A stretch of DNA of 64,000 bases from Eutreptiella sp. 'Long Island Sound 2002'. Taxonomy: Eukaryota > Protista > Euglenida. Positions 2,144-25,238 of this stretch are shown here, piece after piece. The position numbers and the translations under genes are program-made. Within the stretch, counting starts at the first letter, position 1, and each line of letters opens with the position of its first letter. The stretch lies in NCBI GenBank assembly GCA_964036045.1, contig OZ038378.1, forward strand, positions 171,678,001 to 171,742,000. The letters run 5' to 3'. The notes beneath the pieces were generated by a model, which searched no databases, was not told where the DNA came from, and saw nothing but the letters and a program-made list of their open reading frames with translations.

Positions 2144-2955
2144 GCGATGGTTGCAATTGTTGCCAGCACATAAGAGCGCTGCAATTCTTAGTCGAACCAA
2201 GTGTCCACCCGGAAAACCTGCCTCCGGCTATCTAAATCGTGACAGGCGAACCGAAAAAAGTCGAGCTACAGCACCGAAATTTGAAGTAACAAAAAATTTA
2301 ACCTCGATTTCCGGTCCGTGAGACACAAACTGAGGGGAAACGTAGCCGAAAAACAATAGTCAAAAGTGGGGTATTTACTATGGGAAGGGAAGAAATGTGG
2401 TGGGAGAACCTCGAGATCGGGGGTAGGGGACATAGCTGATTTGTAGGGGGTAGGGTAGAGGGGAAAATTGAGATGGACAATTGAAAACATTTTAAAAACC
2501 TCATAGAAACCTGACAGTTATTGACAACGCATAAACGTCACACGCAAAACAGGCACGCAGAGCATAGGGCCAAAACGAATAAGGACAATTTCTGATGATC
2601 TCTTTCAAATGATGCCATCTGTGTACTCGGTGATTGTGCCGAGCAGCTCAAGGAGTGCTCACTTCAAGTAACGATGAGCCTTTCAGCAGTGAAAGACATA
2701 TTACTCCGGGCAAGATGCTATCGAAATTTCGATAGCATAATATAGAAAGGAATCTGTCGTCGATGCCTATCGAAATCTCGATAGGATTAAAACATAAAAA
2801 TCTGACGGGCGGGGGCCAATCGAAATTTCGATTGACGAAAACACAGCATCGGTGGTCATCGAAACAAGGTTTCTATCGAAATTTCGATAGAGAAAGCAAC
2901 AACATATCACCAGGAGAAATAAAAAACGGAGACTAGAAATATGACATATGCTCGA

Positions 2956-5888
2956 TTACTTCTTGGTGGTAGCCCGACTCGGATGAGAATCCTTGTGGGG
3001 CGAGCCCTTCTTCTTGGGCTGATCCGTAGCAGCCTTCGACAACTTGGCCTGAAAATCAGCAAAAGCAGACTTCTTCTTCTCTTTTTCCTTCTGTGCTCCT
3101 TCTTTCTTACCTTTCGCCGATTCTTTTGCCGCCTGCTTTGCTGCTTCCTTCGCCGCCTTTTCGGATTCCTTCTGCAGAGGAAGGGTGAAAGAATGATTAA
3201 AGAAAATAAAACATCGAGGCAGATATGTAGATATAAACAGACATACTTTCTCTTGAGCAGCCGCTTTTTTCTCTTCTTTCGTCAAGGCCTTGCTGACTTT
3301 TTTCTCAGCGTCCTTCGCTGCCTTCGCTTCACCCTTGACTGTGTCCTTGTCTTCGTCATCGTCCGAAGAATCTGTGGCAGAACAAATAGTGAAGGAGAGG
3401 AACAAGACAAATTTGATGAGGTGTCTTTCAATGCATACCTTCGTCAGTGTCAGGAGCCTCAAGGGGATAACCCCGCTTCATTCTGTCGAGAACAAGATCC
3501 CATTGGATCGGTGGTAGGGCCTGTACCCTTTGAAGGCCAACTGAAACTGTAAGAAAAAGCGGAAAAAATGAGTTGAGGAGTTGATTGTACTAGCGCAGGA
3601 AGGGAGGCCTTGCAACATACCATCATCAGCAAACTTCGTCAATTGTTCTTTGCTCGGAGCCGTTGACAAACCAAGAAGAACGGCAACGTTAACGTGAGAA
3701 CGGAGACGAAGCCGGATGTTGCTCACCAGAACGGGAGATGTAGTCTGAACCGCAACCCAGATCTCGTTGACGCTTTCTTCGATAACATCCAATTTGAGTT
3801 GATGCATGATGCAGCCGAGAATCTTTGGAGGGAGTCGATTGTCATCTTCGGCCGGATTGTTGTACCGCTCGTCTTCGAAGGTAATGTACCTCGGGGGCTA
3901 AAAGAAAAACAATCGAAATTTCGATAGGAGGAAGTACGCAAAGCGACGCTATCGAAATTTCGATAGAACACACCTTCCATTCTTTGATATGGCGCAATGT
4001 CAAGACAACGAGCTGGAAAGTTGCCATGGTGTAATTGCTGGTCAAAATCCCTTTATTGTACAACGCGATGTCCCTGGTATAGAACTCATCATCCGTTGAC
4101 GCAGAGATGGCGTTCAGAACAACGCGGACGTCAGGACGATCTCCAACCAACAGCAGAACGGGCATCAACTCCTCATCAAGGACGTAAGACAACATCATTG
4201 GACACAGGGGGCGTCCCGCAGCGGTACCCTTCGGAATCTGATAGACGAGAATCCTCGGTTTCAGTCCAGAGATTGCAGCAGGGGTTGCACCGACAGCTGG
4301 CCCGATGCGGACTTCACAGACTGCCTCTCCGGGTTTGGTTTCACCAAGCGTTACTGTCAGACATTCTGCCGACGTACTTTTGATCACAGGCTTCACCTTC
4401 GGTTGACTGAGGGATTCGCGGAGGGTCTTGAAATCCTCATCAGACCAGATGGGGGCCTTGCCTGATGGTCGTCCAAGGCGGCAAAGGATGCTGTTCGGTC
4501 CACTTCCAGCGCGGGATATGCACCTTGAAATCCTGGGGTGACAGTGATGACGTTATTCTCTTCCACTCTGCAAAGTTTTTCCGAGACTCGTGCACGAAGG
4601 GGTTGTCCGGATGTTCCAAATGCCAAGAACAAGTTCGCTGCTCCCGAAGTCTCCGAACGAAGGTCTTAAGCAATGGTGGCGTCAGACCTCCTTCCAGCAG
4701 CCTTTCACAGACCTGTGAAGATATGTCCGAAGATGACTGTGTTGTTTTAAATAAGAATGTCGCAAAGAAAGTAACTACCTGCGCAATCTCCGGCGGATAC
4801 AATCCCTCAAGCGGCTTGTAGTTGTTGAACACCGGGTTCAACTCGTCCTTCCCCTGAAGCTCGACGAGTTTCGGAATGATCGCTTTGTCCTCAACTTGGG
4901 AAACGAAACTTGCAAGAACCGTCCATCGCTTTACAACTTCTTCGTCTGTGCCGTGCACGGCAGTGTATCCGGTCTTGTGCATCATTGTCAGCGTTGCGGC
5001 CTTTGGGGTAGGTACTCCTGCATAGATAATAAGGAAAGAATTGGTGACGTAATGTTACCCGAAGTGGACCCGCTATCGAAATTTCGATAAAGACCTTTGA
5101 GGTGACACTCGGTGAACAGGCGATGGAGTCGTTGCTCAAACGTATGCTCAGATCCGCCATGGGATGCCCGGTTGTGATGCCCAGCGAGGGTTTGTCGAAT
5201 CCAAAAGGGTGTGTCCGCACTCAAAATCAACCCGTCGTACATCCTTGTCCAATGAGGCGGTGTCTTGCCTTCTTCTTCGTACTTCTTTCGTACATCCTGG
5301 GTCGTTTCGAAAGCATGTTGTCCACCCAGACACTTGAATGTAGCGCCTGACGAGGAATCGTACAATCAAAATTTCGATAGAAGGTACGATGTAATCGTCC
5401 GTAACGCAGCACGGCAATCAATCGAAATTTCGATAGCAAGGTACACCTGTTGGAAAGAGTAAACATTCGATGTATTTGTCCTTCGGTGGTGGAGCAGCAA
5501 GGATGTCATCACCAACCAACGCTTTCTTCTTGGTAGTAACCGTTCTTGTTTGACCGAAGCTCATGTCGCGGTCCAGTTCGATCTTCGAGTAATGAACAAG
5601 TTCTCGGGACTCAACCCAATCGTCGAGATAGACCTGAGAAGTATCGTGCCATTCCTCAACCTCTGCGGATGTCGCTGGTCTGCTCTGCTCTGCAACGATC
5701 TTCTTCTTCTTCTTCGGTGGAGGGGACTGAGAGAAAAGCGCAGCCTCGGAAGTATCCGTTCGGGGGCTTGCAGTGTCCGTTGAATGCGAATACGTTTGAG
5801 ATGGAGGCTCATCAGAGTCCCCTGCCGGCTGCGACCGCTTCTTCTTCTTGATCCGCTTCTTCGGTGACAAATGGGACTCACCGGACAT
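2956..5888 (-). CDS. Element 1 gene B (about 820 aa, 7 exons, one frameshift): basic/acidic N-terminus, ParB-like domain, degenerate amino-methyltransferase-like region, Lys/Ala/Glu-rich tail
   Basis: Exons 5888-5447, 5346-5095, 5017-3974, 3897-3621, 3546-3439, 3371-3247, 3171-2956. All six introns are GT..AG with pyrimidine tracts and join the track ORFs in frame (FPT/G/ATFKCLGGQH; HLK/G/VPTPK; EWK/PPRYITF; DD/V/SVGLQ; DE/D/SSDDD; QEK/KESEK). Total 2464 nt implies a single +1 frameshift at about 4450-4530. ParB-like call rests on IECLLF..F.CLGGQH and LAGHHN motifs (inference). The 3' half aligns by eye with element 2 remnants. Confidence 0.75.
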
Positions 5889-6327
5889 TGGGTAAATGTA
5901 CTGAGGGTGATTAACGAGGTAAAACCTGTGCGCAAACGAGCTGAGGAACTTGCAAATGGACGATTGGGGCGACGAAAGTGCTACTTTGCTTGTGAGACCG
6001 AATATTTCTGTGAAGGTTTTTCAGTACCTCTAAATGTGAAGCGATAAGCTCAGATTCATCGGTTACGTCCAACTTAGAGTCCAAATCTCGTAAATGCAAT
6101 CGAAATTTCGATAGACCGCAGACGAGGTACCGAGAAACGTTGTCTGATCAGGTTTACATAGACTTCGAAGGAGATGAAATAGATCCGATATGCATAATAT
6201 AGATCGAAGGAGCATTGGACCAAGCAAAGAGTGGGTATTACATGATGAAAGGATTCGATCAAGTACTTACGCACTGAAATTGCAACAAACAAACGCGCAA
6301 TCGAAATTTCGATAAGCGACTCAAATC

Positions 6328-8421
6328 TCAATGTTCAGCGGCAAGAAGCCGCGGACCTTCGGCCTCATCAACTATATGTTCGTCGTCCTCATCAGGTTCG
6401 CTCTCGCTGGATGGCGGGTCAAAGAGGGCAGGAGGCGGGCCTCGTGGCTGTCTACGAAGGCGTCCCTGGTATCTGTCCGGAGGGGGATGTGCTTCAAGCG
6501 ACCGTGTTGTCTGTAGTTTTTTCCAAGCTTTCACATAGGAAACACGATCAGCAAGAGGTGTTCTAGGAATGTGGGTCATATATTGATGGATTCCCTCTGT
6601 GACATCTCTGTGTTTGCACATTAACTTGAGAGCCCGAATCATGCACATATCAAGTAAGGGTGAATCAACAGTTAAGTCAAGTGGAGGAAGGTAACTGGGA
6701 TCCCATACAGGATCAGGTGTAACTGTCCTGTGTTTGGTCTGGAACCGTGTGAACGGCGTGTTGATATCCGCAGCCCGTTGAACAAATGAACGTATCGTAA
6801 TAACAAAATGTGTAACCAGATGTGGCTGGACCGAAGATCTGAGAACCCGTTCTTTCTGCAAGGGGGGAAGGGTGCAGTACACATCACTTGCGCGAGAAAG
6901 ATCTGTGACGTGTGGCAGCAGGGTGAGAGCATGTCCCAAACGTGACAAAGAGGCTTCACAACTTTCCTCAACGAACAGACAACCAGGAACCATGTCATAC
7001 CATAACTGCCATGTACCGAGTGCAGTGCATAAGGTCCGAACATACTCTATCTTGGGAGCATGCTTTTGTGTAAGGGAGACCAGTAAAAGCAGACAATGTT
7101 CAAGAACAGTGCGTGCGGTCTTCCCAGAATCCAGAGCAGCCCCGGCCCAGGTACATTCTCGAACCCCATACCCAATGGCCCAGAGTGCAGGTGTAAAAAC
7201 ATACAACAGACTGTACAGGGACTGAATCTTTTGATATGCCACAGTGTTTTCAAGATTCATTGGTCGTCTGAGGGTCGACAATCTATCTCTAGCTTCGGTG
7301 ATAAGACCTTTCAACACGTTGCCCGCTAACAAAAGACCGGCAAAAACCTTTTCCATGTATATGAGCTTCCGATGACAAGGAATGCTAGTCCGCACCGTGA
7401 TAAACGGTTTGAGCAGCCAAGAAATAACGGGAAAGAAACGCCTGAAAGTAATGTGTACACAGTATTTGTACGGATGCCAAATGCCATAAAGCAGTGGAAT
7501 GCGTTCCAAATGTGACCGGTAGTCAAGACTTCTGAGCTTCGCACCGTAAATGAAACGCAACACCGATGCATGTATTTTCATGTCGACCAGCAAAGGCAAA
7601 TCCCGGCCTGTATGAATCTGTATGCGACGCATCATCTCAATTAACTGCAGCAGCTCAGTGTTTGTGCTTGTTCGACACTCGTCCAGCAGCAGAGGTTTCC
7701 AAATTTGTGGATGCACGATACCTCTGGCGATGTCGAGTGGCGCACGGATGAAATGTGCCTGTAACGTCCCATCCGTAACAGCTGCAATAGTGTTCAGTAG
7801 ACCCCTGATGGAGGTCCGAATGCATCTCATGACACCTGGCAGTCTGAAAACTATGCGGCGCAATGTGAGATGTCCAGGAAATCGGGGCAGCAAGATTGTA
7901 AAGAGCACGGCTACGGCAGAACAGTCAAGATGTCCGGGCGGTCCATCGGGGTTCTGGAGGAATCGTTTTCTGAAAAAATTGTCCATCCAAATGCCAACAG
8001 AAGCAATGCTCATTGCATTCCAGAGGTCCATCGCTGCTGCAACACCAGATTCCTGCAGAGTCGGTATTCGAGGTGGAACTATGCCAAACCTTGCGAGTAA
8101 CTTCTGTTCGCGCTGCGAAACAGTAATATCCAGAGCCGGGCGAAAAGCGAGGGGTGCCGCACGCAGGTGCGGCACATGCCAGATGTTGAAGAGCTCCTGC
8201 TGGAGTACGCTGAGCCATCTGGGCAAAGGTGTACAGTTTCTGTTTGCAACCACCTGCTCAAATGTCTGGCGGCGGCGTTTGGTTATCCTTATTCCAAGGA
8301 CAAATTCAACAAATCGCCTTGACGTACCGCCTTCACAAGCATCTTCAATAATTTGGCGTCCATTCTCCCAAGAGTGCGAAGCGAGGAATCCTCGCACGTA
8401 GGCAATGAAATGGCCATCCAT
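6328..8421 (-). CDS. Element 1 gene A: 697-aa putative DDE-type transposase, intact single ORF
   Basis: Long uninterrupted ORF between TIRs. Candidate catalytic pattern W(M/L)DN ... PLL(V/I)DMK ... YG(I/V)WHPYKYC ... EESCEASLS; the first three motifs are conserved in the element 2 homolog. Transposase identity is inferred from context and D-D-H-E spacing. Confidence 0.7.
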   Translation of the reverse strand: MDGHFIAYVRGFLASHSWENGRQIIEDACEGGTSRRFVEFVLGIRITKRRRQTFEQVVANRNCTPLPRWLSVLQQELFNIWHVPHLRAAPLAFRPALDITVSQREQKLLARFGIVPPRIPTLQESGVAAAMDLWNAMSIASVGIWMDNFFRKRFLQNPDGPPGHLDCSAVAVLFTILLPRFPGHLTLRRIVFRLPGVMRCIRTSIRGLLNTIAAVTDGTLQAHFIRAPLDIARGIVHPQIWKPLLLDECRTSTNTELLQLIEMMRRIQIHTGRDLPLLVDMKIHASVLRFIYGAKLRSLDYRSHLERIPLLYGIWHPYKYCVHITFRRFFPVISWLLKPFITVRTSIPCHRKLIYMEKVFAGLLLAGNVLKGLITEARDRLSTLRRPMNLENTVAYQKIQSLYSLLYVFTPALWAIGYGVRECTWAGAALDSGKTARTVLEHCLLLLVSLTQKHAPKIEYVRTLCTALGTWQLWYDMVPGCLFVEESCEASLSRLGHALTLLPHVTDLSRASDVYCTLPPLQKERVLRSSVQPHLVTHFVITIRSFVQRAADINTPFTRFQTKHRTVTPDPVWDPSYLPPLDLTVDSPLLDMCMIRALKLMCKHRDVTEGIHQYMTHIPRTPLADRVSYVKAWKKLQTTRSLEAHPPPDRYQGRLRRQPRGPPPALFDPPSSESEPDEDDEHIVDEAEGPRLLAAEH

Positions 8422-9565
8422 CTTTGGCGTACATGAAACTCGTACATGAAGTAGAAGACAACAAATAGTCTAGTATTTAAAATCTTTGAAATCTGTCAGA
8501 CTGTCACTATCGAAAATTCGATTGCAGTTTAAACAGCCTATGCTTTACAGGGTAGTTATTCCTTTAGCGGCTATCTAAATTTCGATTGGACATTCCTATC
8601 GAAATTTCGATAGGAATTGAATTCCTTTTCTGTCGAATGCTCCTATCAAAATTTTGATTCGAGATGCTCCTATCGAAATTTCGATTGGTTTTAGAAATAA
8701 ATCGATCGTGTAGACATCTCCATCGGATAAAACATTCATATGTGTTTGATTTATTTTACCTCTTATTTCTTTTACCTTTATTTTTCTACAAAGTTGTAAT
8801 TTAAAATTCATATACTACTGTAGTACAACTATGTTCCGGTAAACCTTCGTGAAGGATTTTCATGGTTTGCTCTCTGAATGTCGTTAAAGACTTCCAATCG
8901 AAATTTCGATTGATCCATGCAAGGCAAATTGTCACGTAGCTTCGACAATCGAAATTTCGATAGCATCATTGCTTTTTCATTCTAATTTTCACATACACAG
9001 ACTATCAGGAGTCGGGTGGACAAACAGTTTGATGTAGCTAATCGTGCAACCGAAGTTTCGATACATGAGACTTCCTGCCTACATTGTGAACTTCCCTGCG
9101 TCTCTTTGCTGATCGAACAACAAACAACATGCAGCAATTCAAATGAAACACACTGAAGTGCATATATGCATGCGCGTGGTAACACGGTGGTACACAACTG
9201 CTCATGTACTTGCACAACCACTGTCTTTTTAGGACATTTCTTCTTTCCCGGGATTGGCTTCATGTTCTTTAACCGTGTTTTTCGCACCGTGTGACACGTC
9301 CCTTTTTTGGTCCACTGTCCGGTGACAGGGGCCCATTTTGGGTGGACACTTGGTTCGTCTAAGCAATTGAAACGGGGCATAATCCCTGTTCCTGTCAAGT
9401 GTTTCTCAATACAGTCCACAAAGCACAGAAGGATTTTATCCATACACACCAACATGACCATGCAAGCACCTGGAGACCAAAAATACCCCGTGCCCTACAG
9501 CCACCACAGTCCCCTCCAAGTCAAAACAGCTCCTGGAGAAAATGACAAAAAACAAGCATACCACG

Positions 9566-11630: not shown

Positions 11631-13139
11631 TTACCTGAACGCATAGCTGAAAGTCACACCGGAATAGAAATGGGCTGCCATCTTAGACGGCTGAACCCCT
11701 ACCTACAAATTTTAATTTCTCTTAAAGAAAACACTTGGAAAAAACACGTTTCAAAATGGTACTTCAAACCAAAAAAATTTGAAATAAAAACCTACCCAGC
11801 AAAAACCCATCTCATCAGGCGAAATGCATTGCCAACACACGAAACAACCATTTGGGAAAATGTAAACAGAAATGGTCTATGAACCTCCCCTCTGCAAAAA
11901 ATCACACAAAGACTTGTTTCATAAACACCAGAGGTTACCAAGAGATGAACAGAAATGCATGATGTGGAATATGAACTGCCCTAATTGAAATAGCTTCTAC
12001 GATATGAAAAAACAAGACTTGCCGAAATTTCGGAAGACAACACGTCTGCCGAAATTTCGGCAGACATTCAGTACGTCGAAATATCGGATGAGATATGAAT
12101 GACATCAATCGAGCGATCTCTGCAATCGTACTTACCACAATATCCAAAATTAAATCGTTTGCCGAAATTTCGGAAGCTTTTCATCCGGTAAAATATTGGC
12201 CATGGACCCCATTACATCTGAAGCCACTAAAACAATACATGATGCACTGTTAGCAATAAAATAAAACGTCATACGTGACCCACTACCCTAAAAAAATGAA
12301 GAAACGCATGTTGTATGCAGCGAATAGCATAAATACGGAGTGACAAACAGAGAATACGAGCAACGCAAAACAAGGCAGTAAAAATCGAAAAGTCGTAGAA
12401 GATTACTCTGTCACAAATGTAGCGCAGAAGCACCCCGGCCCGTCCAAGACAGGTCAAAGTAAGTGATGGAGAAATAGACGGGACAAAAATTGATATATAC
12501 CAAACCACACAGACCAATCCCGCAAACCCAAAGTGACATATACACTTCTCGATAGCAAACATACCGCAATGCACGAAACGACGTGTACTGCAGTAGCCGA
12601 ATACACAGTACCTAACAACATAGGTCACCTGGAACATATGCAGTGGTATGACAGCAGAAGGCTGCACAGCCAATATATATGAAAAAAGGAGGTGCACCAG
12701 GAACATCCGCAACAGAGAAGTATATCTAACAACAAAATTTCAAAAGGCTGGTGTAGTCCACATTCTTGACCAAAGAACTGGACGTATTAATCCGACACGA
12801 AAAAAAAAGTTGTATAGATCCCAATCACAACCATTGCAGAATCCAGATAAACCAATAACGCAAATAGTGAACGACAACCTGCAAAGAGAGAAAGCGAAGG
12901 GAAAAATGTAACAAGCAGATGCGAACATAAATATCGAGAATGCAGCATACCACAGCTAGAACAATCAGTTCTTGCGGGCCAACTGGCTTTGAAATGCAGC
13001 GAACGACTTTGCTCCAGATTTACTCTTCTTTTCAGCCTGGCAATAGCGAGGGGCATGATGCAACACCAACTCCGAACGTCACAGTATTGTATACGTAGGG
13101 AGGCCGGCAACATGCAGACACGCAGTGCAGCATACTTCT

Positions 13140-14374
13140 TTCTTCTGCTTAGCCTCTGCAGCAGCAGCTTTCTTGGCGTCGGCCTCCTGCTTCTTTTTCT
13201 CCGCGGCCTCCGCTTTCGCCTTGGCAACGGACTCCTTCTCCTTCTTGGCGGCCTCCTTTGCGACGGCCTTCTGCTGCCGCTCAGATGCTGCCTTCTCCTT
13301 GGCGGTAGGTTCCTTGCCCGCTTTCTTAGGAGCCGAAGTGGCCCGAATAGGTTGGTCCTCTGTAACACGTTACATAGACAAATCCAAGAATGTGGTAGCG
13401 AGAGTGTCTTCCGAAATTTCGGAAGACAATAGATGATAACAAATGTTGAAAAGACGTAGCACTGTGTCCGGTATTGACTAGATGAATGCCGGGGTCATGC
13501 AGTATATTCAGTCAGCACACCACACCTTCTTCTTCACTCTCCTCAGAAGACGATTCATCGACCCCTTCTGGAGGATACAAAGGCTCACCATTCAGCAACC
13601 TCTGGCCGATCAGTGTCCAAGGAGGCCGATCCCGATTGTCACACTCCACCAGATTGGTTGTAATCTCCGCCTCCAGAGTGTTCGTAGTTGCAGAATTCAG
13701 CCCCAAATGTACAATACTTGCCGGAGTATGAAGCCGCACGCGCAAATCTGCCGTCAGTCTGGGCTTATCGGAAACCACAAGCGCCCACATAACAGGACTT
13801 TTCTCGGCCCCATATGCGTTGATAACCGTTCCCGCAATTTCGAGCGGCAGATCTGACGTCATAGTGTCACAGAAAGTGACATATCTGGGCAGGGTATACT
13901 GAAAGAAGATGGATAAGGAACGGAAGGATAAGGTTTTATGAGAAGGAGCAGTACATTGTACGCCAACACACCCGTGGCAGTTTGTGGGCGAGGATGAGCA
14001 TCGTCGTGGCGTGCATGCTGTAGTGGAGGGTGAACATTCCAGTGTTGTACACTGCCAGTCGGAGCACATGAAGACTCTCAACATCGCAGGCAGCCTTCAA
14101 CTGGGAACCATAGCTGGTTGCATCTGACTCGGAACCATGGATCACAACGGTGGTGCCATCGCAAAGTGCTTTGCTGATCAAATTGTGAAACCCACCAATG
14201 TGGTTCTTCGGGACTTCAACGAATACCACATCGAAGTTCAGAGTCGCAACCTCAGGGGGAATTGGTGCACCAGGGGTTCCATTCACAAGATAAATGATAC
14301 CTTCGCCCTGTGATCCTTCGCCACATGTGATTTTGGTCGGGTGTTTGTCGTCTCCAACCAGAACCTGTAACGTA
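13140..14374 (-). pseudogene. 3' remnant of element 2 gene B (homolog of element 1 gene B); N-terminal ParB-like part deleted
   Basis: Spliced segments give TKITCGEGSQGEGIIYLVNGTPGAPIPPEVATLNFDVVFVEVPK (element 1: LTVTLGETKPGEAVCEVRIGPAVGATPAAISGLKPRILVYQIPK), LPRYVTF (PPRYITF), LTADLRVRLH (LVSNIRLRLR), PPWTLIGQRLLNGEPL (IQWDLVLDRMKRGYPL), then an acidic patch and a K/A/E-rich tail. GT-AG introns fall at similar positions. Confidence 0.7.
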
Positions 14375-14935
14375 ACAATGTGACAGCAATATTTGACGAT
14401 GTCTCATCTTCTACTTGCAGCGCATATCGAAAGTGGAGAACGAATAGTTAGACAGTACTTGTACGGGTGCCACACCCCGTACACGATTGTTTGCACAAGC
14501 TGAGCACAAGAAAACTGCACAGGACGGGTGCGCTGCGGACCACTCCGCTGGATGCAGGACCCCACTCTGAAACGGACCCTAACCCTATACCCTAGTCCAC
14601 ACGCTGCAGCACGGTTAGATCCCCCACTCTACCCGAGGGAATCGGTTTCAAAAGGGAAAGGAAAGGGCATGTGCTCTCAGGGGGTCAGCCGGTCAGTGGG
14701 TGGGTGGGCGGGCAAAGACAGGAAAACTGCCTAAACATTGGAGACGCAAACAAAAGTTGAGACGAGGCACAACTAGTGTTTGCACAAGCTGAGCACAAGA
14801 AAACTGCACAGGACTTGGGTATTCATTCTCCGCCGTACCCAGTTCCCACACCACAGGTCCCACATCCGGATCCCAGCTCCCGAGGAATGTGAACTGAGGT
14901 ATTACTCAAGCAAAAGGCAAAGCAACAGAAGCAAC

Positions 14936-15075
14936 CCCCCCCCCCCCCACTACAACCAGGGGACCCGCCACCGTGCACTGTGGACCCGCATCTTCCCGAG
15001 ACACGGCGCCGCGCTCAATGGCAGAGGCCAGAGGCTGAAGTGGAGGGAGGGCAGGATTCGTGTCTTGCACCGGGC
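14936..15075 (-). repeat. Diverged internal duplicate of about 18852-18990 within the YR retrotransposon
   Basis: Both contain gacccgcatcttcccgagacacggcgccgcgctcaatggcagaggcca; translations LPPLQPLASAIERGAVSREDAGPQCTVAGPL vs LPPLPPLASAIERGAVSREDAGQLCAVAGPL. Confidence 0.85.
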
Positions 15076-15129
15076 CCAAATCAGCAACGCCACCTCCTGC
15101 GGACCCCTCCATCGGCCGCGCCGCACGGA

Positions 15130-15820
15130 CTCCACCACAGTGGACAGACCCAGGTGGTCACTACGGCCTTCGTGCCCCACGTACAAATAAGGCGGGTAAA
15201 TTGCATCAACCGGCCGGCAGCCCCAGCCGGACGCGGAGTGAGGCCGGCCCAAAAAGGTCTCCGCCATACCCATGTATCCACCACAGGGTCCACAACCTAA
15301 CCCCGGCGGACTCCTCCAGCGGCCATGCCGCCCCGGACAGCCACCACAGCGGGGAGATACAGGCGATCACGACGGTCGCCGTGCCATGCGGACAAAGAAG
15401 TGGGCAAATCGCACCAACCGGCCGTCAGTCCCAGCCGGATGCGGAGCGATGCTGGCCCAAAAAAGGTGAATAAATAAAGCACCCAGCGGCCGCGCCTCCA
15501 ACCAAGTAAAAAGACAACACAACATGCGCACCCAGCGGCCACGCCGTCGGAGTCAACCTCTGCAGAGGGTAGATACAGGCGAACACGACTGTCGCCGAGT
15601 CTCACTGACGGTAAAAGGCGGTCAGTCCCAGCACCCGGCCGTCATCTCCAGCGGAACGCGGACCGACGCAGCCCATAAGTACAAAACCAAATCAGCACCC
15701 AGCGGCCAAGCCGTCAGGGACACCCACTGCACTGGGCGGGCACAGACGACGACGACAGTCGTCAGTCCTCACGGGTTGAAGAGGCGGGCAAATTGCAACA
15801 CCAGCCCATATCGGGCCTGG
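15130..15820. repeat. Diverged tandem repeat of about 210 bp (3-4 units) in the 3' region of the YR retrotransposon
   Basis: Recurring gatacaggcga.cacgac.gtcgccg (about 15355, 15572) and gg(t/c)aaat(t/c)gca.caaccggccg.cag.cccagccgga.gcggag (about 15193, 15401, variants at about 15620 and 15787). Confidence 0.6.
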
Positions 15821-16361
15821 ATCCATATATAGGGTACAGCAACCCTGCGTCCCTGGTTCCAGTCCGTTAGGGAGACCACAGCGACTCCCTCCGGCAGCCT
15901 TACCTCCCAGACCTGGCAGCAGGCATGCCGCCCTGGGGGTTTGACGCCGCGGCCGTCGGGGGTCGTGCGGCGGTGCGGCGTGCCTCCCACGCGTGCGGCC
16001 ACGTCCCGGACCGCCCGTTCCAAAAATCCCTCCCTGTCGTCAGGGAGGGGGCACTGGGGGCACAGGCGCACCCCGTTGCCGAGCAGCACCCGGCGGATGG
16101 GCAGGCGCGCCAACCTGCCGCAAAGGCGGGTGCGGAGCACGCTGCCCCACTTCGCCGCCCGGCGCTGCTGGGCGTCCGCGGAACGCTGGTGCCGCTGTCC
16201 GCCATGGCGACCCTTCCGGTGGGCTCCGCGGGAACCCCGCCGCTTGTGGGCCCCACGCGAGCCCCGACGCTTGGTCATAGGTGCGGATAGCAATAAAAAA
16301 GGTTGCTACATGGAGGGCACATACTCTGCCGGCTCTGGTCTGCTGGGGGGGGGGGGGGAGG

Positions 16362-18357
16362 CTAGCATCCCCGGAGACACACCACCCCCCTCACCCGAGC
16401 CTCGCCCAGATTCTCCAGCAATGCATCCCACGTGCACCAAGCCTCGACTTCCGCTCTGGCCTGTGAGCCTCCGAACACTGACGTCACCCTGGACATAGGG
16501 TCTCCCGGCTGAAGCGCCGAGGGCACCCACACGAGGCGGAGCACGATCCCCGATACCCACAGGATTCTAGCCGACGACCGAAGGACCGTTTGGTGGTGGG
16601 TCAGATGGCTAGTCGCGCGCAGCCTGAGGACCTGAGCAATGGCCGCCTCACTGTCGCTACAGACCGTAACAGATCGGTGTCCCGTCCTGACTGCAAACCT
16701 GACAGCCCACGCCACTCCCCTCAGTTCCGTGGTTTGCTGGCTGGCGAAGCGGGCAGGAGGTGTCACATGCGTACGCACACCCACTCCCGGCACGAGCGCC
16801 CCAACCCTCCAGCACCCCGCATCGCGCGCTCCATCGACACAGATGACGACGCCCCCGCACCACAGAGATGATCGCGAAAGCCTATCCTCAGTCCCAAACT
16901 GGAGGGTCCTCAATTGCCGCCAGGCCTCCCCGCCCGGCGCCTGCCAGGGCTCGGCCGCCACCGCCACCAATGTTGCGAGGCTGCCCAGCATTTTCAGGGG
17001 GAAGCCCTGGGCCGGTTGTTTGACCCCCCCCACCGTCCTACCCCAGCGCAACCAGCAGTAGGCGCCCGCCGCGAAAGGGCAACCCAATCCCCTCGGACGC
17101 ACATGCCAATTCAGCAAACCCAGGAAGCTTTGGAGGTGCCGGTCGTTGCCTGCGCCAACCGCCAGCCTCAGCCATCCCGCCCACAACTGGAGCAGTGCTT
17201 GTTCATGGCTCCTGATCTGCCTGGCCTGCAAGTCGAGCTCCTTCCCCAGGAATGACGCCACAGGCACCGGGTCCAGGACACTCTTAGGACTTATGAGGAA
17301 CCCAGCCTCGATCAGGGCACGCACTGCCACTCGCCCCGCCTCCCTGAGCACCTCCCTATCAGTGAAGACGAGCAAAAAGTCATCGAGGTAGTGCACAAGG
17401 AGTATCTCGGGGGGCAGTACCCCCTGCAGAATGCGCGCCAAACTCGTTTGGCACAGATAGGGGCTGTATTTCCAGCCAAACGGTAGGCGCGACAGCGCCA
17501 CAGGCGGAGCCCCGGGGGCGGGCCGGAAGCGAAAAACCTGGCGCGCACCCTGGGGCAAGCAAAAGCTCCAGAACGCATTTTTGAGGTCAATGTGGAGGCC
17601 GTAGAGGTCCACATCAGGCGGGAATGCCGACAAGGACCTAGCCAAATCCTCCCAGGAATCCAATCTAAAAGTGGGGGGCTTGCCCCCGTCACTCTTGTTG
17701 ATCTTGACGCAACTCAAGATCAAGGAGACCTTCTCGGATGATTTGGGGATGACGAAGGGGTAACACGTGGGGGGGGGGGGGGTCAACCGGCTCCTCGTAG
17801 ACCCCCGCCCCCCTCAACGCTTGCACTATCCTCTGGACCTGCTGCGACACCCATCTGGTTGCCCCTCGGACCACCCTATCCCCGTCCTGCCACTCTTGCT
17901 CGACGTCAAAATCCTGGAGCCCTCCGTGGTAGAAGGGCGGTACGACAGCGTCCCACAGATCGTCCGGTAGCTGGTGGGAGCCTACCGGTCCCAACCCCCG
18001 GTCCAAAATGGCATCCTCGACCCCCCCCATGAACCGCGGAATGGGGGAGGTGTTGATATGGAGGCATGACTCCCAGGCGTCCGGGTGGAGCTTGCGCAAG
18101 GCGCCCAGGAGAGCGGGTAAAGCCCCTTGCAAGCGGAAATCCTCGGCTGTATCGAATACTCTATTCAACCACAAATCCACCCTCTTCGCAAACATCCACA
18201 AGCCACAACGTTCCCGCTCGGCTATCCAGTGAAAATGGGGGGTGAGCGCCTGCATGAACTCCAGGAAGAGGGGGGGCTGCTCCTGCACCCTCCCACCCCT
18301 GTCGGGACCCTTACAGAGGGGGGGGGGGGCGACGCCACTGGGCCCGCCCTCCCCCAA
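16362..18357 (-). CDS. Reverse transcriptase + RNase H (pol) of the YR retrotransposon; one frameshift in a 14-nt homopolymer at 17769-17782
   Basis: RT motifs IDLKNAFWS, LPFGWKYSP, YLDDFL, GFLISPKS, FLG; RNase H motifs VDGA, QQTTEL, CSDS, GDPMSR. ORF 17689-18357 (..GVYEEPVDPPPP) joins ORF 16362-17786 (TCYPFVIPK..) if the run is 13 rather than 14 nt. Confidence 0.9.
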
Positions 18358-20027
18358 GCCTTGGCCTTGAGGCGCTCAGCTGCAGCCACGAAGGCACCCT
18401 CCACCGGGCCTTGCGCCTCCGGCGTCCGGACACGCCCGCCCTGCCCGAGCTTGATGCGCTTGGGCTGCGGCGTTCCGATCTGCTGGGCCAAACGAGGTCT
18501 CCCAGCTTGACGGCGTGCGGGGGCTCGGGATCGCACGGCCTGCGTACCATCCAGGACCACCTTAGCGCGACGCGGCCCCGCGTATGTGCGGTAGACACGG
18601 CCCACCACTCCAGCTTTCGAGCCCGCTGCGGGTCCTCCTCTGACAGGGCCAACGGCTGCCCTGGAGGACCACGGCTTACGCTCCCGTCCAACGAACCTGG
18701 CAACTCCGGCCTGTCGACGCCCGGGGGAGCCCCTGGCGCTGCCGACTGCGAATTCGCCAGAGGGCTCGCTTCCGGAATCCTCGCTGTTGTCGTCGGTGTC
18801 CACGTCGGAATCGACATTGATGGGCCCGGCTGCCGTTCCCGGCCCGCACGCCCCCCCCCCCACGGCCACCAAAGGCCCCGCCACCGCGCACAGCTGACCC
18901 GCATCTTCCCGAGACACGGCGCCGCGCTCAATGGCAGAGGCCAAAGGAGGAAGTGGAGGGAGGGTAGGAGCTGTGTCAGGCCCCAGGCCCACCTCAGCAG
19001 AGCCGTCCCCTGGGGATTCCTCCAGCTCGGCCGCGGTTTGGTCTCCGTCGCCTCCTCCCCCAAGCGTGCCGCTCGCAGTGGATTCCAGCTTCTGACCTCG
19101 CGGAAGTCTCGGCTTGCGCTTGGTCGGGGTGTTGAGGGCGCTCGCGATACTGGGGAACATCGGGGATCCCCACAGGGCCAGGACGCCCACGCGTTCCGGA
19201 GTCGGCAAAGGCCCCTGGTCACGGGACCATGCGGGCAGCACCGTAGGGGCAACGACTCCCGGGTCTGACCATTTGGTGCCGTATTGCATCGCCACGGCCG
19301 TGCTCTGCCATCTGCCCCACCATTTGTAGTAGGCGAGGTCTGGCTTACGGGCCCAAGTCGCTGCGGCGCCTCCCCTGCGCAGGGCGTGCCACCTGGCTCG
19401 GAAGTGGGCGGTGCTCGCCAGGGTGTCGGCCATGCCTGCCTCCAACCCCGCTTCCCCTGACTGCCAGACGAGCATGTCTGAGGACCGGCCCAGCGAAACC
19501 ATGTGGCCATGAAGCCACGCCCGGACGCCGTCCGCATACCTGTACAGGGGGCGGGTGGTGTACCCCTCCTCCCCTGTCTTGGAGTTCCAAAACTGGACAA
19601 AGCCTGGCATAGCCAGGTCAGTAACCCTGATGCCAGCCGCTTCGCCCACCCGCAGGTAGCATACCCAGCTGATGATGGCCAATGCGCTGAACACCGCTCC
19701 GTGTCTGGAGTCTCTGGCCTTTTCGACCAGCTGGACCAAGCCTGCTGGGGACAGATAGGGCTGAGAGCCCGAGGATGCGGCTCCCGCCGCAATCCGTTTG
19801 TGCAAGGTGGTGACTGTTGGGGGCAGCCACTGGAGGTCCTCCACGGCTCTGACCGCGGAGGTAATACCCCGCAGGGCCGACGCTGTAGCGCCGGCTTGCG
19901 CCCGCTCCGCCAGGAGGCCTGCCAGTGCTGCGGCTGTATCAGGCGGGCCCGTGCGGTCCGCGTAAGCCGCCAAGGCCCGGAGTCGGGACGCGTACTGCGA
20001 GCGGGTTCGCGGTCTCCAGGACTGCAT
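18222..20027 (-). CDS. Tyrosine recombinase with long low-complexity C-terminal extension overlapping the pol ORF
   Basis: Catalytic R-K-H-R-W-Y pattern: YLRVGEA, NSKTG, HALRRGGA, WGRW, AMQY. Confidence 0.9.
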   Translation of the reverse strand: MQSWRPRTRSQYASRLRALAAYADRTGPPDTAAALAGLLAERAQAGATASALRGITSAVRAVEDLQWLPPTVTTLHKRIAAGAASSGSQPYLSPAGLVQLVEKARDSRHGAVFSALAIISWVCYLRVGEAAGIRVTDLAMPGFVQFWNSKTGEEGYTTRPLYRYADGVRAWLHGHMVSLGRSSDMLVWQSGEAGLEAGMADTLASTAHFRARWHALRRGGAAATWARKPDLAYYKWWGRWQSTAVAMQYGTKWSDPGVVAPTVLPAWSRDQGPLPTPERVGVLALWGSPMFPSIASALNTPTKRKPRLPRGQKLESTASGTLGGGGDGDQTAAELEESPGDGSAEVGLGPDTAPTLPPLPPLASAIERGAVSREDAGQLCAVAGPLVAVGGGACGPGTAAGPINVDSDVDTDDNSEDSGSEPSGEFAVGSARGSPGRRQAGVARFVGRERKPWSSRAAVGPVRGGPAAGSKAGVVGRVYRTYAGPRRAKVVLDGTQAVRSRAPARRQAGRPRLAQQIGTPQPKRIKLGQGGRVRTPEAQGPVEGAFVAAAERLKAKAWGRAGPVASPPPPSVRVPTGVGGCRSSPPSSWSSCRRSPPIFTG

Positions 20028-20162
20028 GGCACTTTCCTCCGGTGAGGAGGGGTCGTCTGACCGGGCTGCTGTCTCCCACCGGCGGGCGAGCGCCCGCAGC
20101 TCTGTCGCCGTGTCCGCAACGCCGGAGCCCGGGGCGGCCGGTCCGGGCTCCAGCCGGTCCTG

Positions 20163-20795
20163 TCAGGACCAGTGTGGGCATCTAAAGTGCCAGTGGCGTT
20201 CGTCGGGGGAGCCCCGCTGCGCGCACCTCTGGCCCCCTCCGCTCGGCGGCGAGTCCACAGGGATCCACTCGCCCTGCCTCGACTGCCATTGCAGTACTCC
20301 TCCCACCTCCCTGAATTTCACGCTCCGCCACGTGAACGCCGATCCTTGTTCCTTCCATGCCTCCTCCAGCGTGGCGTACTGGTTGGACTCGGAGCTGGTT
20401 TTTCCGTGCGTCCCTGCATACCTTCGGGCATACGCCGCCTGGGACTGGGACACGCAGTCCCAGACCCTCCACGCCAGCTGCTCTCCTGGGTCGACTGCGG
20501 CCTCCGTCGCCTGGCCGCCAAACTCACTTGGTCGGGGGATCTCCCCCACCTCACCAGCTCTAAGGCGCACGTACGCCTTGATGTTGGACAGCATGAGCCT
20601 CATCCACTGTGCCAACTGGGGCTTCTCGAGGGCTCGGTTTACTTCTGGTACGCTCAGTGGGGGCAGGCGGGGCCCCTCCTTCACTGCCACTCGGGCGAGT
20701 TGCTCTCTAAGTTCTTGAATTTCTTTGGCTTGCGCCGCCAGCCGCTCCTTGGCTGACTCTTGCTGGTTCTGATTAGGCTGCTCAACCCCGTCCAT
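20163..20795 (-). CDS. Gag-like ORF1 of the YR retrotransposon
   Basis: First ORF after repeat A1; N-terminal coiled-coil-like stretch (AKERLAAQAKEIQELREQL) and C-terminal Cys/His knuckle-like motif (CAQRGSPDERHWHFRC). Identity inferred from position. Confidence 0.65.
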   Translation of the reverse strand: MDGVEQPNQNQQESAKERLAAQAKEIQELREQLARVAVKEGPRLPPLSVPEVNRALEKPQLAQWMRLMLSNIKAYVRLRAGEVGEIPRPSEFGGQATEAAVDPGEQLAWRVWDCVSQSQAAYARRYAGTHGKTSSESNQYATLEEAWKEQGSAFTWRSVKFREVGGVLQWQSRQGEWIPVDSPPSGGGQRCAQRGSPDERHWHFRCPHWS

Positions 20796-20874
20796 GGGTT
20801 AACAAAAACAAAGACAGGAAAACTGCCTAAACATTGGAGACGCAAACAAAAGTTGAGACGAGGCACAACTAGTG

Positions 20875-21811
20875 GTATATGCTGCAGAAAATGCCTGAAG
20901 TTAAAATGCAGATAATCCTTCCCATACAGAAATCTCATTAAAGCATTGTGTACCTTCATGTCGATCAGCAATGGCATTGTTTTCCCGGTATGGCGCTGCA
21001 CCTCTGAGACCATGCCTAGTAGATCCAACAAATCTGCAGTACAACCACATCTTGTCCCAGAGATTTGAAAAGGATGCCACACCTGTCGTTGAACAACGTC
21101 ACGAACAATGTCCAGAGGAATGCGAATCCAACTCCTATCGGCTGTGAGAGCAGTTGCAATGGAATCTTTCAATGCCTGAAAAGACTCCTTGATTTTAAAT
21201 GCCAAAGCTGGTACTGCCAGACGCATTTCTCGCAGTGTCCTGTGGCCTGGAAAGTTGTTCAACCTTACGGTACGAAGGAGACATGTAGCAGTTGCATTGT
21301 GTGAGCGGTCTGAGTAGAAGGGATTCAACACAAAATGCTTGATGTAGACATTGTCAAGCCACATGCAGGTGCTCTTACCATCAATGCGATCCCAGAGTTG
21401 TTGTGCCTTGTTCGCAGCTCGTTCATACAGAGACACTTCCTGTCGGGCGACAATTCCGTAGTTCTTCAACACACGCTGTTGTGCGCGCGTGGCCGAGATG
21501 AACAGTTGTTCCGGTTGCAGCTGCCGGTATGGGACAACATGAGCAGACATTGAACGCCAGATACACATCACCTCTTTGGCAAAAATTGTAATCCACCTCT
21601 TCCTTGGTGTCACACCGACATCAGCCAGAAATTTGTTCCAGGATGGGCGTGTACTTTTTTCAGCTCGCATTTGGAGACAGAACAGCACAAATGTGGCACT
21701 GACACCACCGGCAGCCGCATCATGCAACATGTCAATGCCTGTGATCCATTCATGTCCCTGAATGAAGCTCCGAAGTGAACATACGAGATCGTGACCCGTA
21801 AATGAATTCAT
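20875..21811 (-). pseudogene. 5' half of element 2 transposase, disrupted by the YR retrotransposon; continues briefly at 14487-14440 then is deleted
   Basis: Aligns by eye with 6328-8421 (WLDN, PLDIVR, WHPF, PLLIDMKVH). Junction reconstruction gives HIPIVYGVWHPYKYCL. Confidence 0.85.
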
Positions 21812-22971
21812 TCATTCAGTGGATAGAAATCACTGTGGGACGAGGTTCCTTACAGCGTTAACATAGGACATGTACCTGACATCTTAAATTTTTTGGAATT
21901 CATTCAGCAATTGTAGCATTCACATATTTGTTGATTACTGTTCAGTGGGATGTGTGCAACTTGATTTACTTCGGGTGATCGGGTGAAGCAATGAAGGTAA
22001 TTCTTCCGAAATTTCGGTGGAGGAATTGCTATCTGAAATTTTGGTATTTGGTTTGTCTTTAGAAATTTTGTGACGGAAATTGTTTGTTTGTTTTGGTAAA
22101 CGTAATGTTTTCCGAAATTTCGGCAGACGGTTTACGATGTGTCTGTCTTCCGAAATTTCAGAAGACAATTGGGATTCCGAAATTTCGGAAGACCGTGTGT
22201 GTTCTGTGTTCACTTCAACGAATGAGGTGCCTTTCGAAATTTCGACAAGACTGAGATCTTCCGAAATTTCGGTAGACATTTCCTTTTCTAAAAAAACTGC
22301 ACAAATTTTTCTCTACCGATATGCGGATGATGAACGTGCAAATGCGTATACAATGTAGTACAATGCAGTACAAGCAATACAGTTCTTCTACATTGAGAGA
22401 TTTGATTTTGTTGTCGCTCTCCTTTCACACAGTAACAGGTTAAGTTAACTTTGTTACTTGGGGGTTTTGGGGTGTAATGTGCTAACTCATGCGCTTCTGT
22501 ACTGTGCCCACCTCCCTTAATTTCTACCCCTGCCTTCGTTATGCTCCTGCATTAGCTACATACCTGCAATCCATTTTTCCGAGTCATTCATACATTTGCA
22601 TAACCTTCATCCTCATATCATATGTTGCCCTATTTTCTCTATGGTCAAATACCCATTTCTACGCCACTTTTGAAAATTTCCGCTTTTTGCATTTTTGGGT
22701 TTAAAATCGGGGTTGGAGTTCAGCCGTCTAAGGCCATGTCAAGCACGTTGCTTGTAGCAGAAACAATGACCACAGCCATGACCCACCTCCTATTACCGAC
22801 TACAACCAGCTCACAAACGGGCGTTCTAGAATTCTTGGCCGCAAAAAGTGCAGGCCAAAAAGACAACCGTCACACAAATGGCGATGCAAAAACAAGGCTG
22901 TGCCAGCACAACGGAACGGCGTTAGGCTCCGTCGAGGTCACTGGGAGACGACCATGGATGGAAGAGACCTT

Positions 22972-23520: not shown

Positions 23521-23716
23521 AAATCATGATGATCATAATCACCACTGTGTGATGGTCATCATACGCCTCAGGGGATCAATTTCTGATACTGAGAGGGGTG
23601 GGGCTTCTGGCCTTCCTGGGATTTTGCCCGACCCGCCACCCACCAGATCAGAGAAATTCTATTGCCTTCGGCAAGTCCACTCGCAGAGAATCTACTCCAA
23701 GAACCGCACACACAAA

Positions 23717-25238
23717 ATAGGGGAAAAACGACATAAATACAGCCTAAAACATGCTTTACATACCTTGGATGGTCATTTTAAGTGATCACGGTATCGGAAC
23801 AATAAGTTTCGACGACTTGGATTTTTGAGCTACCCAGGGTGAAAAACTGCATCATGAGGGTGTGTACCCATCCCTTGGGAACCCCCCCCCCCCCCCTGAC
23901 CTAATACCCAAATAGGGTGAAAAACATATAAATACGGCCTAAAACATGCTTTACATACCTTGGATGGTCATATTGTGTGGTCACAATACCATAAAAACAA
24001 AATGCGAAAACTTCGATTTTTGAGCTCTACAGGGTGAAAAACTACATCAGCAGGTTGTGTACCCATCCCTTGGGAACCCCCCCCCCCCTGGACCCAATAC
24101 CCAAATAGGGTGAAAAACACCTAAATACGGCCTAAAACATGCTTTACATACCTTGGATGGTCATATTGTGTGGTCACAATACCATAAAAACAAAATGCGA
24201 AAACTTCGATTTTTGAGCTCTACAGGGTGAAAAACTACATCAGCAGGTTGTGTACCCATCCCTTGGGAACCCCCCCCCCCCTGGACCCAATACCCAAATA
24301 GGGTGAAAAACACCTAAATACGGCCTAAAACATGCTTTACATACCTTGGATGGTCATTTGAGGTGATCACAATATCATAAAAGCAACTTTCGAAAACTTC
24401 GATTTTTGAGCTGCCCAGGGTGAAAAACTACATTAGCAGGTTGTGTACCAATCCCTTGGGAACCCCCCCCCCCCCCCCGTGCGCCCAATACCCAAATAGG
24501 GTGAAAAACACCTAAATACGGCCTAAAACATGCTTTACATACCTTGGATGGTCATATTGTGTGGTCACAATATCAAAAAAGTAAGTTCGAAAACTTCGAT
24601 TTTTGAGCTGCCCGGGGTGAAAAACTGCAGTAGCAGGTTGTGGGCCGGCCCATTCACTAGGCCATTATTGGTGGAAACAGTCATTTCGCGTCTTTGGCAC
24701 GGGTTGTGACCGGCTCTCAGCAAGGCTACAGACTGCAAAAAACGTCCTTTCGTATCCTAGTAGGCATATACTGTCACAACATCCCCACTCACACCCCTCA
24801 GAGTGGGTACCACAGGGTCACCGAGGTCGCCAAAACCGCCAACATAGCAAAAATGGCTGAAAGGCGCATAAAGTGCACCAGAGCTCGTCCCACTCCGCCC
24901 CATACAAACCCCATGGAGTCGGGACCCGGGAACACTTTTTCAGCTCAAAATCGAAAAAAACCAAAAGATTCATGATTTTCGACCCAAAAAAAGGGGGGGT
25001 CATTTTTTCGACATTTTTGATCCCCCCCACCCCCCCCTCCCTCAAAAACTCCAAAAAAGTGGGTTTCAAGTGGGGGGGATCTGGGGAGGTCCGGACCACA
25101 AACTCATTGGGGGATGTGTTTATTGGACAAAATAATGATTTTACAAGGGGTTAAACTAACAATTCAACCCCTTGGGGTAGGGTATGCAAATAGGCCCAAA
25201 ATGGCCCAAAATGGGGGGTATGTGGCGTTTTCCCCTAT
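23717..25238. mobile_element. Non-autonomous TIR element carrying about 4.7 tandem copies of a unit of about 195 bp
   Basis: Imperfect TIRs ataggggaaaaacgacata (23717) / tatgtggcgttttcccctat (25219-25238). Units start at aaatac(a/g)gcctaaaacatg at 23735, 23930, 24123, 24316 and 24514. Confidence 0.7.

Follow-up and report, generated by a model that had tools for sequence, protein, structure and literature searches.

Does the second gene of a small DNA transposon encode the protein that reads the palindromes scattered through it? The question is raised by a 64,000-nucleotide stretch of the genome of Eutreptiella sp. 'Long Island Sound 2002' (contig OZ038378.1, positions 171,678,001 to 171,742,000; this whole stretch is called the window hereafter, and positions are given within it). 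Near its left end, at 2187-9363, lies a transposon of the cut-and-paste type of about 7.2 kb, which we call family 1. It contains a long open reading frame (ORF A), predicted to encode the transposase, and a second gene with several exons (gene B). We propose, giving the proposal about an even chance of being right, that this is a two-gene transposon in which the gene B protein binds the palindromes of its own element and so marks the element as self. Both the role of gene B as the palindrome binder and the effect of the binding are what we infer.

The element at 2187-9363 is a copy of a mobile eukaryotic DNA transposon family. Its terminal inverted repeats are 24 bp long with one mismatch (96% complementary), with CTTAGTCGAACCAAGTGTCCACCC at 2187-2210 on the plus strand and the paired repeat at 9340-9363 on the minus strand. 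The target-site duplication CAATT, read from the sequence, occupies 2182-2186 on the left and 9364-9368 on the right. The nearest database relative of ORF A (P0001, 97% identical, belonging to a cluster with 45 member sequences) allowed a second copy to be located on a different contig of the same assembly (ENA ERZ25074135; locus L001, 7060-14263), which is 97% identical over 7.2 kb. The similarity between the two copies is lost exactly at the inverted repeats, and the L001 copy is flanked by the duplication AAGCA. Clean inverted repeats and a 5-bp duplication had already been noted in the preliminary description of the locus; both were borne out, with the correction that the outermost bases CTTAG/CTAAG belong to the inverted repeat and not to the duplication.

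Two further families are present in the same genome. Family 2 was found via the protein P0005 (33% protein identity) and is represented by locus L002 (7008-15898, duplication AACAT) and by an element within the window (11682-22732, minus strand), in which the terminal octamer is CTTAGACG, the target-site duplication is ATGGC, and the palindromes, 12 in number, are of a separate type, CTtCCGAAATTTCGGaAG. An internal loss of approximately 4.2 kb, equivalent to L002 8900-13145, has deprived this copy of the greater part of ORF A and of the initial gene B exons, and both subterminal palindrome clusters have been kept. Family 3 was found at locus L013 (5913-14037, duplication ACTTG). As a result, five independent insertions from three families show five different 5-bp duplications (CAATT, AAGCA, AACAT, ATGGC, and ACTTG). 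The terminal octamer CTTAGACG is common to all three families, with one family-1 end reading CTTAGTCG.

The family-2 element of the window also holds a 6.4-kb nested retroelement insert (14490-20872). The insert is GC-rich (59-67%) and contains long minus-strand open reading frames, one of which matches the reverse transcriptase RVT_1 (E = 5e-13); at the junction, a duplication of two host-element bases is apparent.

Relatives of the element also occur in environmental metagenomes, several of them with the same layout. Wherever a locus is long enough to reveal the arrangement (L001, L002, L013, L003, L006, L007, and L008), ORF A is followed by a gene B homologue on the same strand, and the ORF A identity across these loci is only 25-35%. 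Additionally, a scan of Joint Genome Institute (JGI) metagenomes with the ORF A alignment returned four short contigs, none with a usable gene B. The copies, the target-site duplications, and the recurrent two-gene layout all bear out the earlier suggestion of a transposon in which a transposase gene is accompanied by another gene, the two being inherited together.

ORF A (6328-8421, minus strand) encodes 697 amino acids and is uninterrupted in the window copy, in agreement with the preliminary description. AlphaFold, Foldseek, and conserved motifs all point to a DDE transposase. The alignment of relatives gave five motifs: W-x-D-N (with D147), R-x-P-L-D-x-x-R (residues 226-233), P-L-L-V-D (with D280), Y-G-x-W-H-x-Y-K (312-319), and E-E-S-x-E-A (485-490). 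The candidate catalytic residues are D147, D280, and E485 or E486; D280 is invariant in the alignment, and D147 and E485/486 are conserved wherever the sequences cover them. The AlphaFold model, built on the relatives' alignment, reached a mean predicted local distance difference test score (pLDDT) of 78.6, and its order of strands and helices fits an RNase H-like core. In this model, D147 lies in strand 1, D280 lies just after strand 4 and is followed by a long helical insertion, and E485/486 are placed at the start of a helix, whereas the catalytic core is preceded by an N-terminal helical region of approximately 130 residues. The Foldseek search against the PDB placed the Hermes hAT transposase first (probability 0.96) and the P-element transposase next (probability 0.95, template modeling (TM) score 0.42), both with E of about 1e-2, and HzTransib at rank 24 (probability 0.20). 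On the basis of the model, we conclude that ORF A is in all probability a DDE transposase of the insertion-domain class with an RNase H-like core.

At the sequence level, ORF A stands outside every Pfam family. ORF A and 11 relatives (12 members) gave zero Pfam matches even at E = 10, and a profile search of PDB sequences with ORF A matched nothing. Fourteen relatives were found among 5.8 billion protein clusters in a search confined to proteins that have short exact words in common with the query. The fold matches, the RNase H-like core, and the long helical insertion before the catalytic Glu are shared with the hAT/P/Transib-type DDE transposases. However, hAT elements have an 8-bp duplication and a dimerization domain, whereas the duplication is 5 bp in all five insertions here and none of the 12 members has a Pfam hAT match; the BED finger, the THAP finger, and the hAT dimerization domain were all undetected in the ORF A family. 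The Transib superfamily has a 5-bp target duplication, as found here. Transib ends are of the CAC type, unlike CTTAGACG, and HzTransib ranked low in the Foldseek search; no Pfam RAG1 match was found in the 12 members. EnSpm/CACTA elements (including Plavaka) and KDZ elements differ as well, as no match to their Pfam transposase profiles was obtained (E up to 10, 12 members), and they are characterized by CACTA ends and duplications of 3 bp, against 5 bp here. ORF A may define a new transposase lineage.

Gene B (2956-5888, minus strand) was delimited by mapping the exon model of the intact L001 copy onto the window. Exons 1 to 4 lie at 5447-5888, 5095-5346, 4779-5017, and 3974-4712, and exons 5 to 8 at 3621-3897, 3439-3546, 3247-3371, and 2956-3171. 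In L001, the eight exons are separated by seven GT-AG introns of 67-100 nt and join into a single frame of 798 codons, and the window exons are 97-99% identical to them. The gene had been described with seven exons; its multi-exon nature was confirmed, and the intact paralogue sets the count at eight. A 63-nt GT-AG candidate for an extra intron in exon 4 was rejected, because splicing it out would not preserve the phase and because the intact copy is read without interruption there. Near its N terminus, the protein carries two stretches rich in Lys; it also has a conserved region at about residues 95-250 and a tail rich in Lys, Glu, and Ala.

Searches with the rest of the protein returned little. 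Exon 4 had no PDB sequence match, and the word-based protein search with it returned only copies from the same genome; tblastn searches of exon 4 against phage records and of the gene B homologue P0079 against plasmid records gave chance matches only. No methyltransferase domain was found in gene B in Pfam-type scans, and no oxygenase signal in Pfam or PDB. By eye only, a weak order of motifs at L001 12100-12834 (gene B residues ~460-640) and in the L002, L013, and L007 equivalents faintly recalls a beta-class N6/N4 DNA methyltransferase lacking its catalytic residues. It comprises a hydrophobic strand ending in D/E/Q-P/V-P/T-K/H/N, VV-x-HG, VYNTG, a Ser-rich stretch where the methyltransferase FxGxG would be, and a conserved R-L; a decayed methyltransferase was considered and is not claimed.

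The N-terminal part of gene B is split in a way that hides its domain. FKCLGGQH opens exon 2, and the other half of the domain, with the invariant G-Q-x-R, closes exon 1; intron 1, in phase 1, runs between them and is present in most lineages. The profile scans of separate exon pieces failed because this intron splits the ParB-like domain. The exon 2 profile compared with PDB sequences gave only spurious matches to ribosomal protein S19e. We searched 1.84 billion representative proteins with profile A3, built from 16 exon-2 pieces, and recovered 528 relatives at E up to 1e-3, many of them contiguous across the domain. One of these, P0079, is the first exon of gene B from family 3 of the same genome and is intron-free across the domain. 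Its AlphaFold model, based on 31 homologues, had a pLDDT of 83.8, and the top 50 Foldseek matches in the PDB all belong to the ParB/Srx superfamily: ParB of Caulobacter, Bacillus, and Myxococcus, Noc, KorB, PadC, sulfiredoxin, SbnI, the serine kinase SerK, and pNOB8 ParB-N. The Foldseek probabilities were mostly 0.9-1.0, the weakest being 0.35. The alignments to ParB, Noc, and KorB span approximately 160 columns, against an N-terminal domain of about 100 residues (for KorB 8qa9, TM score 0.42 and root-mean-square deviation 4.6; no residue-level alignment).

The window exons were connected to this fold by hhalign. Exon 2, which holds the core of the ParB/Srx-like domain including FKCLGGQH (5096-5344, minus strand), aligned to family profile A5 over P0079 residues 95-169 with a probability of 98.2% and E = 3e-14, and exon 1 of the window aligned to the family profile over residues 18-79 with a probability of 72% and E = 3e-5. 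The motifs GQxR, GGQH, and AG are invariant in 32 gene B homologues, whereas the fuller SGQHR is kept in the relatives L003, L006, P0019, and P0020, the Arg after the His occurring in that lineage only. In the P0079 model, G-Q-x-R lies in the loop before helix 1, at the place of the ParB QPR box; the register is taken from the model, and the two motifs are probably equivalent. The assignment of the N-terminal part of gene B to the ParB/Srx superfamily is supported because the predicted structure of P0079 matches it and the window exons align to the family profile. The earlier suggestion, made from F.CLGGQH, that gene B is ParB-like was therefore upheld at the level of the fold, through the P0079 model and the exon alignments, with no sequence-profile match.

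The palindromes are concentrated in the family-1 element. Allowing up to two mismatches to ATCGAAATTTCGAT, we counted 19 sites in the element and one weak site in the other 57 kb of the window, against about 0.11 expected by chance. None of the 19 falls in coding sequence, which makes up 63% of the element (P about 8e-9). A left subterminal cluster of four (2720, 2769, 2819, and 2875; 2720-2888) lies 3' of gene B, five are in three introns of gene B (3912, 3951, 5075, 5365, and 5421; 3912-5434), two lie between ORF A and gene B (6099 and 6300; 6099-6313), and a right subterminal cluster of eight lies 5' of ORF A (8509-9062). The symmetrized family-1 consensus is 18 bp, CtATCGAAATTTCGATaG. The palindrome is not part of a longer repeat unit, because similarity fades quickly beyond these 18 bp. 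It had been claimed that approximately 19 palindromes are confined to the element. The 19 sites were found as claimed; however, the 10-bp core CGAAATTTCG is not unique to it, as 12 copies with other flanks occur in the family-2 element at 11682-22732.

Each related lineage has its own extended palindrome, similarly distributed. The three families of this genome have the central ten palindrome bases in common and differ in the flanks, as seen when the family-2 palindrome is set beside that of family 3, TTCCAtTCGAAATTTCGAaTGGAA. In the other lineages, the palindromes are tTGCGTAATTACGCAa in L003 (41 sites, in arrays with 28-bp spacing), ACGCGTAATTACGCGT in L006, TTAatGGCGCGCGCCatTAA in L007, and CGGCGAGGCCTCGCCG in L009. 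The comparison of sequences supports the palindromes as a conserved, family-specific feature. A shared core with distinct flanks is what one would expect from a dimeric protein co-evolving with its binding site, with the families avoiding cross-recognition. The subterminal palindromes of the relatives were also observed in regular arrays with a spacing of 27-28 bp and up to ten in a row (L003 1166-1443; L002 7470-7581 and 15492-15546).

How the two genes and the palindromes may work together can be outlined as follows. ORF A would do the cutting and joining, at ends beginning with CTTAGACG, leaving 5-bp target duplications. The gene B protein would enter the nucleus and bind as a dimer to family-specific palindromes of 18-24 bp (here CTATCGAAATTTCGATAG) through the helices that follow the ParB-like domain; in the structural comparison, those helices appear to correspond to the part of ParB, Noc, and KorB that binds DNA. 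Non-coding DNA of every kind in the element carries such palindromes, from the two subterminal regions to the intergenic space and the gene B introns. A multi-site complex of gene B protein would then build over the whole element, marking it as 'self'. That sites are kept far from the ends, even in introns, suggests marking or coating of the whole element and not end pairing alone. One possible outcome is that the cognate transposase would be helped to assemble on the right ends; another is that the element would be kept free of silencing in a VANC-like manner, and the two are not separable here. A fuller reading, which we offer tentatively and hold to be possible at rather less than an even chance, is that of an unclassified eukaryotic DDE superfamily (5-bp duplication, CTTAGACG ends, and a transposase without a profile) combined with a ParB/Srx protein. 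This protein would have co-evolved with palindromes in all non-coding DNA, introns included, and would coat the element as self for transposition control or escape from silencing.

Several observations count against binding of the palindromes by gene B. Neither sequenced family-1 copy is fully intact: in the window, an additional G in exon 4 (near 4462) throws gene B out of frame, and a stop comes after residue 401; ORF A of L001 (8001-10094) has Asn at the otherwise invariant Asp280 (LLVNMKIH) while its gene B is intact, the reverse of the window copy. The Pfam, NCBIfam, and PADLOC scans of all exon pieces and 20 contiguous homologues found no significant ParB family, the best ParB profile match being ParB_N on exon 2 of the relative L003 (E = 0.32, 11.5 bits). 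The fold was modeled on the homologue P0079 and not on the gene B protein of the window, and its Foldseek E-values are modest (2e-3 and weaker). The middle part and C-terminal 550 residues of gene B have no recognizable domain in profile searches. In the gene B family, the cytidine triphosphate (CTP)-binding box GERR is changed to GGQH and ENxxR to AGxxQ/N; CTP-dependent clamping cannot be assumed because GERR is replaced. Finally, judging from the model, the N-terminal helical region of ORF A could equally read the palindromes.

This last point is the main rival, according to which the palindromes are binding sites of the ORF A transposase, like the subterminal repeats of hAT, P, and Mutator elements, and gene B acts elsewhere (chromatin or DNA modification, or as a nuclease). 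We regard it as somewhat unlikely. It would account for the fact that 12 of the 19 palindromes lie in the two subterminal regions, where they are densest, and that the internally deleted element at 11682-22732 retains both subterminal clusters. It would also give a task to the approximately 130 helical residues ahead of the catalytic core, and the Hermes and P-element transposase structures were both solved with transposon-end DNA, according to their PDB entry descriptions. However, the remaining seven sites are far from the ends, in introns and intergenic DNA, where end recognition does not need them, and the same spread of sites is seen in all families. Moreover, a dimeric ParB-type helix-turn-helix protein would be a natural reader of perfect palindromes of 16-24 bp.

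It is improbable that the palindromes act as nucleic-acid structures, either hairpins in the pre-mRNA or DNA cruciforms, on splicing, transcription, or termination with no element protein reading them. Sites do occur in introns and untranslated regions, and CTATCG-AAATTT-CGATAG, as read from the sequence, would allow a stem of 6 bp closed by a loop of 6 nt. However, such structures leave unexplained why three families of one genome have the same core with family-specific flanks, and why arrays extend beyond the transcribed parts, in the subterminal clusters outside both genes; additionally, a comparison of the window with Rfam matched nothing. Gene B as a true partition or tethering factor of the ParB type, anchoring excised or extrachromosomal copies as ParB-parS does for plasmids, would fit the ParB/Srx fold and the many parS-like palindromes. 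We consider it highly improbable, as no ParA-type partner is present (the element has two genes only, neither with a Pfam ATPase match), the GERR CTP box is replaced, and the elements sit in chromosomes as ordinary insertions flanked by target duplications. Equally remote is the view that gene B was captured as a passenger or derives from the host and plays no part in the life cycle of the element. The frameshift in the window copy and the large size of the exon-2 domain family (528 matches against 14 detected ORF A relatives) can be cited for it, whereas ORF A precedes gene B, with order and strand unchanged, even where the transposases are only 25-35% identical, and the intron splitting the ParB-like domain is conserved in most such lineages.

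Taking its tandem repeats and satellite together, the window is a repeat-rich region. A 6.5-kb satellite at 31522-38074 is composed of about 315 copies of the 20-bp unit GGGCTGGGGGACGCGCACAG, with a 497-bp higher-order period, 76% G+C, and a strong strand skew. Tandem repeats of 193 bp (4.8 copies) and of 85, 109, and 213 bp were found at 23715-24642 and 30319-31259, and a short tandem run of GCACTGCGTGC-type units occurs at 2031-2097, approximately 90 bp off the left end of the family-1 element. Eleven copies of another palindrome, CGACGCGTCG, were observed at 53913-54540 inside two short arrays of a 55-bp repeat; among the ORF A and gene B relatives fetched, none matched near it. The sole ordinary-looking host-type domain seen in the window is a MYND zinc finger (E = 2e-6) in a 488-amino-acid open reading frame at 55925-57391.

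The comparison with known systems corrects one point of the preliminary description, which knew of no described eukaryotic cut-and-paste transposon with this combination. Giant Plavaka (EnSpm/CACTA) elements of red algae, 17-19 kb long, carry the genes PAG1, PAG2, and PAG3 (Petroll et al. 2025, bioRxiv 10.1101/2025.02.11.637652, subsequently in Current Biology). According to these authors, PAG3 has a weakly ParB-like N-terminal domain (HHpred best match 7BNR) and a putative C-terminal 2-oxoglutarate oxygenase domain, its gene adjoins inverted-repeat arrays, and the protein is proposed to bind to its own transposon; PAG genes also occur in Zisupton, Mutator, and Fanzor-bearing elements (bioRxiv 10.1101/2025.02.11.637652). 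Set against PAG3 by its published description and not by sequence, gene B is alike in its weakly ParB-like N-terminal domain, in having no Pfam/InterPro domain, and in its association with inverted repeats, and 7BNR is also in the Foldseek list of P0079. Unlike the PAG3-bearing elements, those described here are of 7-8 kb with two genes and a 5-bp duplication, their palindromes are dispersed and reach into introns, and their transposase has no match to the Pfam EnSpm/CACTA or Plavaka models. No PAG3-type His-x-Asp...His pattern is conserved in the C-terminal part of gene B, as judged by eye in three families only.

A second precedent is the accessory gene of Sola1-1_Ec32 in the brown alga Ectocarpus, which combines a ParB-like domain with a DNA methyltransferase (PMC12477816), and ParB-HTH-Dam fusions are described in chlorophytes and chytrids (Iyer et al., PMC4738411). 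In these systems, as in gene B, a transposon accessory protein that is proposed to bind and modify its own element has a ParB-type domain of prokaryotic ancestry. However, gene B has no detectable methyltransferase, and the transposase and the duplication length differ from those of Sola1-1_Ec32. VANC, the anti-silencing protein of the Mutator-like VANDAL elements of Arabidopsis, binds family-specific motifs, often in tandem, in the non-coding regions of its own element (PMC5735166). There too, an accessory protein encoded by the element is paired with family-specific non-coding motifs that have diverged between related families of the same genome. No relation in sequence or fold is evident, and the VANC motifs are not palindromes; the resemblance would be functional only. 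The bacterial ParB-parS, Noc, and KorB systems resemble gene B in the fold of the N-terminal domain and apparently of the following helices, in their many perfect palindromes of 16-24 bp, and probably in the Gln-x-Arg loop motif. They differ in that gene B has GGQH(A/S/R) for GERR and AGxxQ/N for ENxxR and has no ParA; moreover, it is a eukaryotic gene with spliceosomal introns, and the C-terminal part of its 798-amino-acid product is large and unrelated.

Algal transposons that associate a ParB-like protein with inverted repeats had thus already been published in 2025, and the element described here does not constitute a new category. It differs from the precedents in combining an unclassified transposase, 5-bp duplications, a small two-gene element, a gene B without an enzyme domain, intronic palindromes, and divergence of the sites between sister families. 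It adds a transposase lineage missed by current profile libraries, and it indicates that motifs resembling binding sites can persist in the spliceosomal introns of a gene that may read them. Few accessory genes are found in DNA transposons, and most of them lack an explanation; this family, with two genes in 7-8 kb, offers a compact test case. As its sharply defined palindrome differs between sister families of the same genome, self-recognition by a ParB-like protein encoded by a transposon becomes directly testable.

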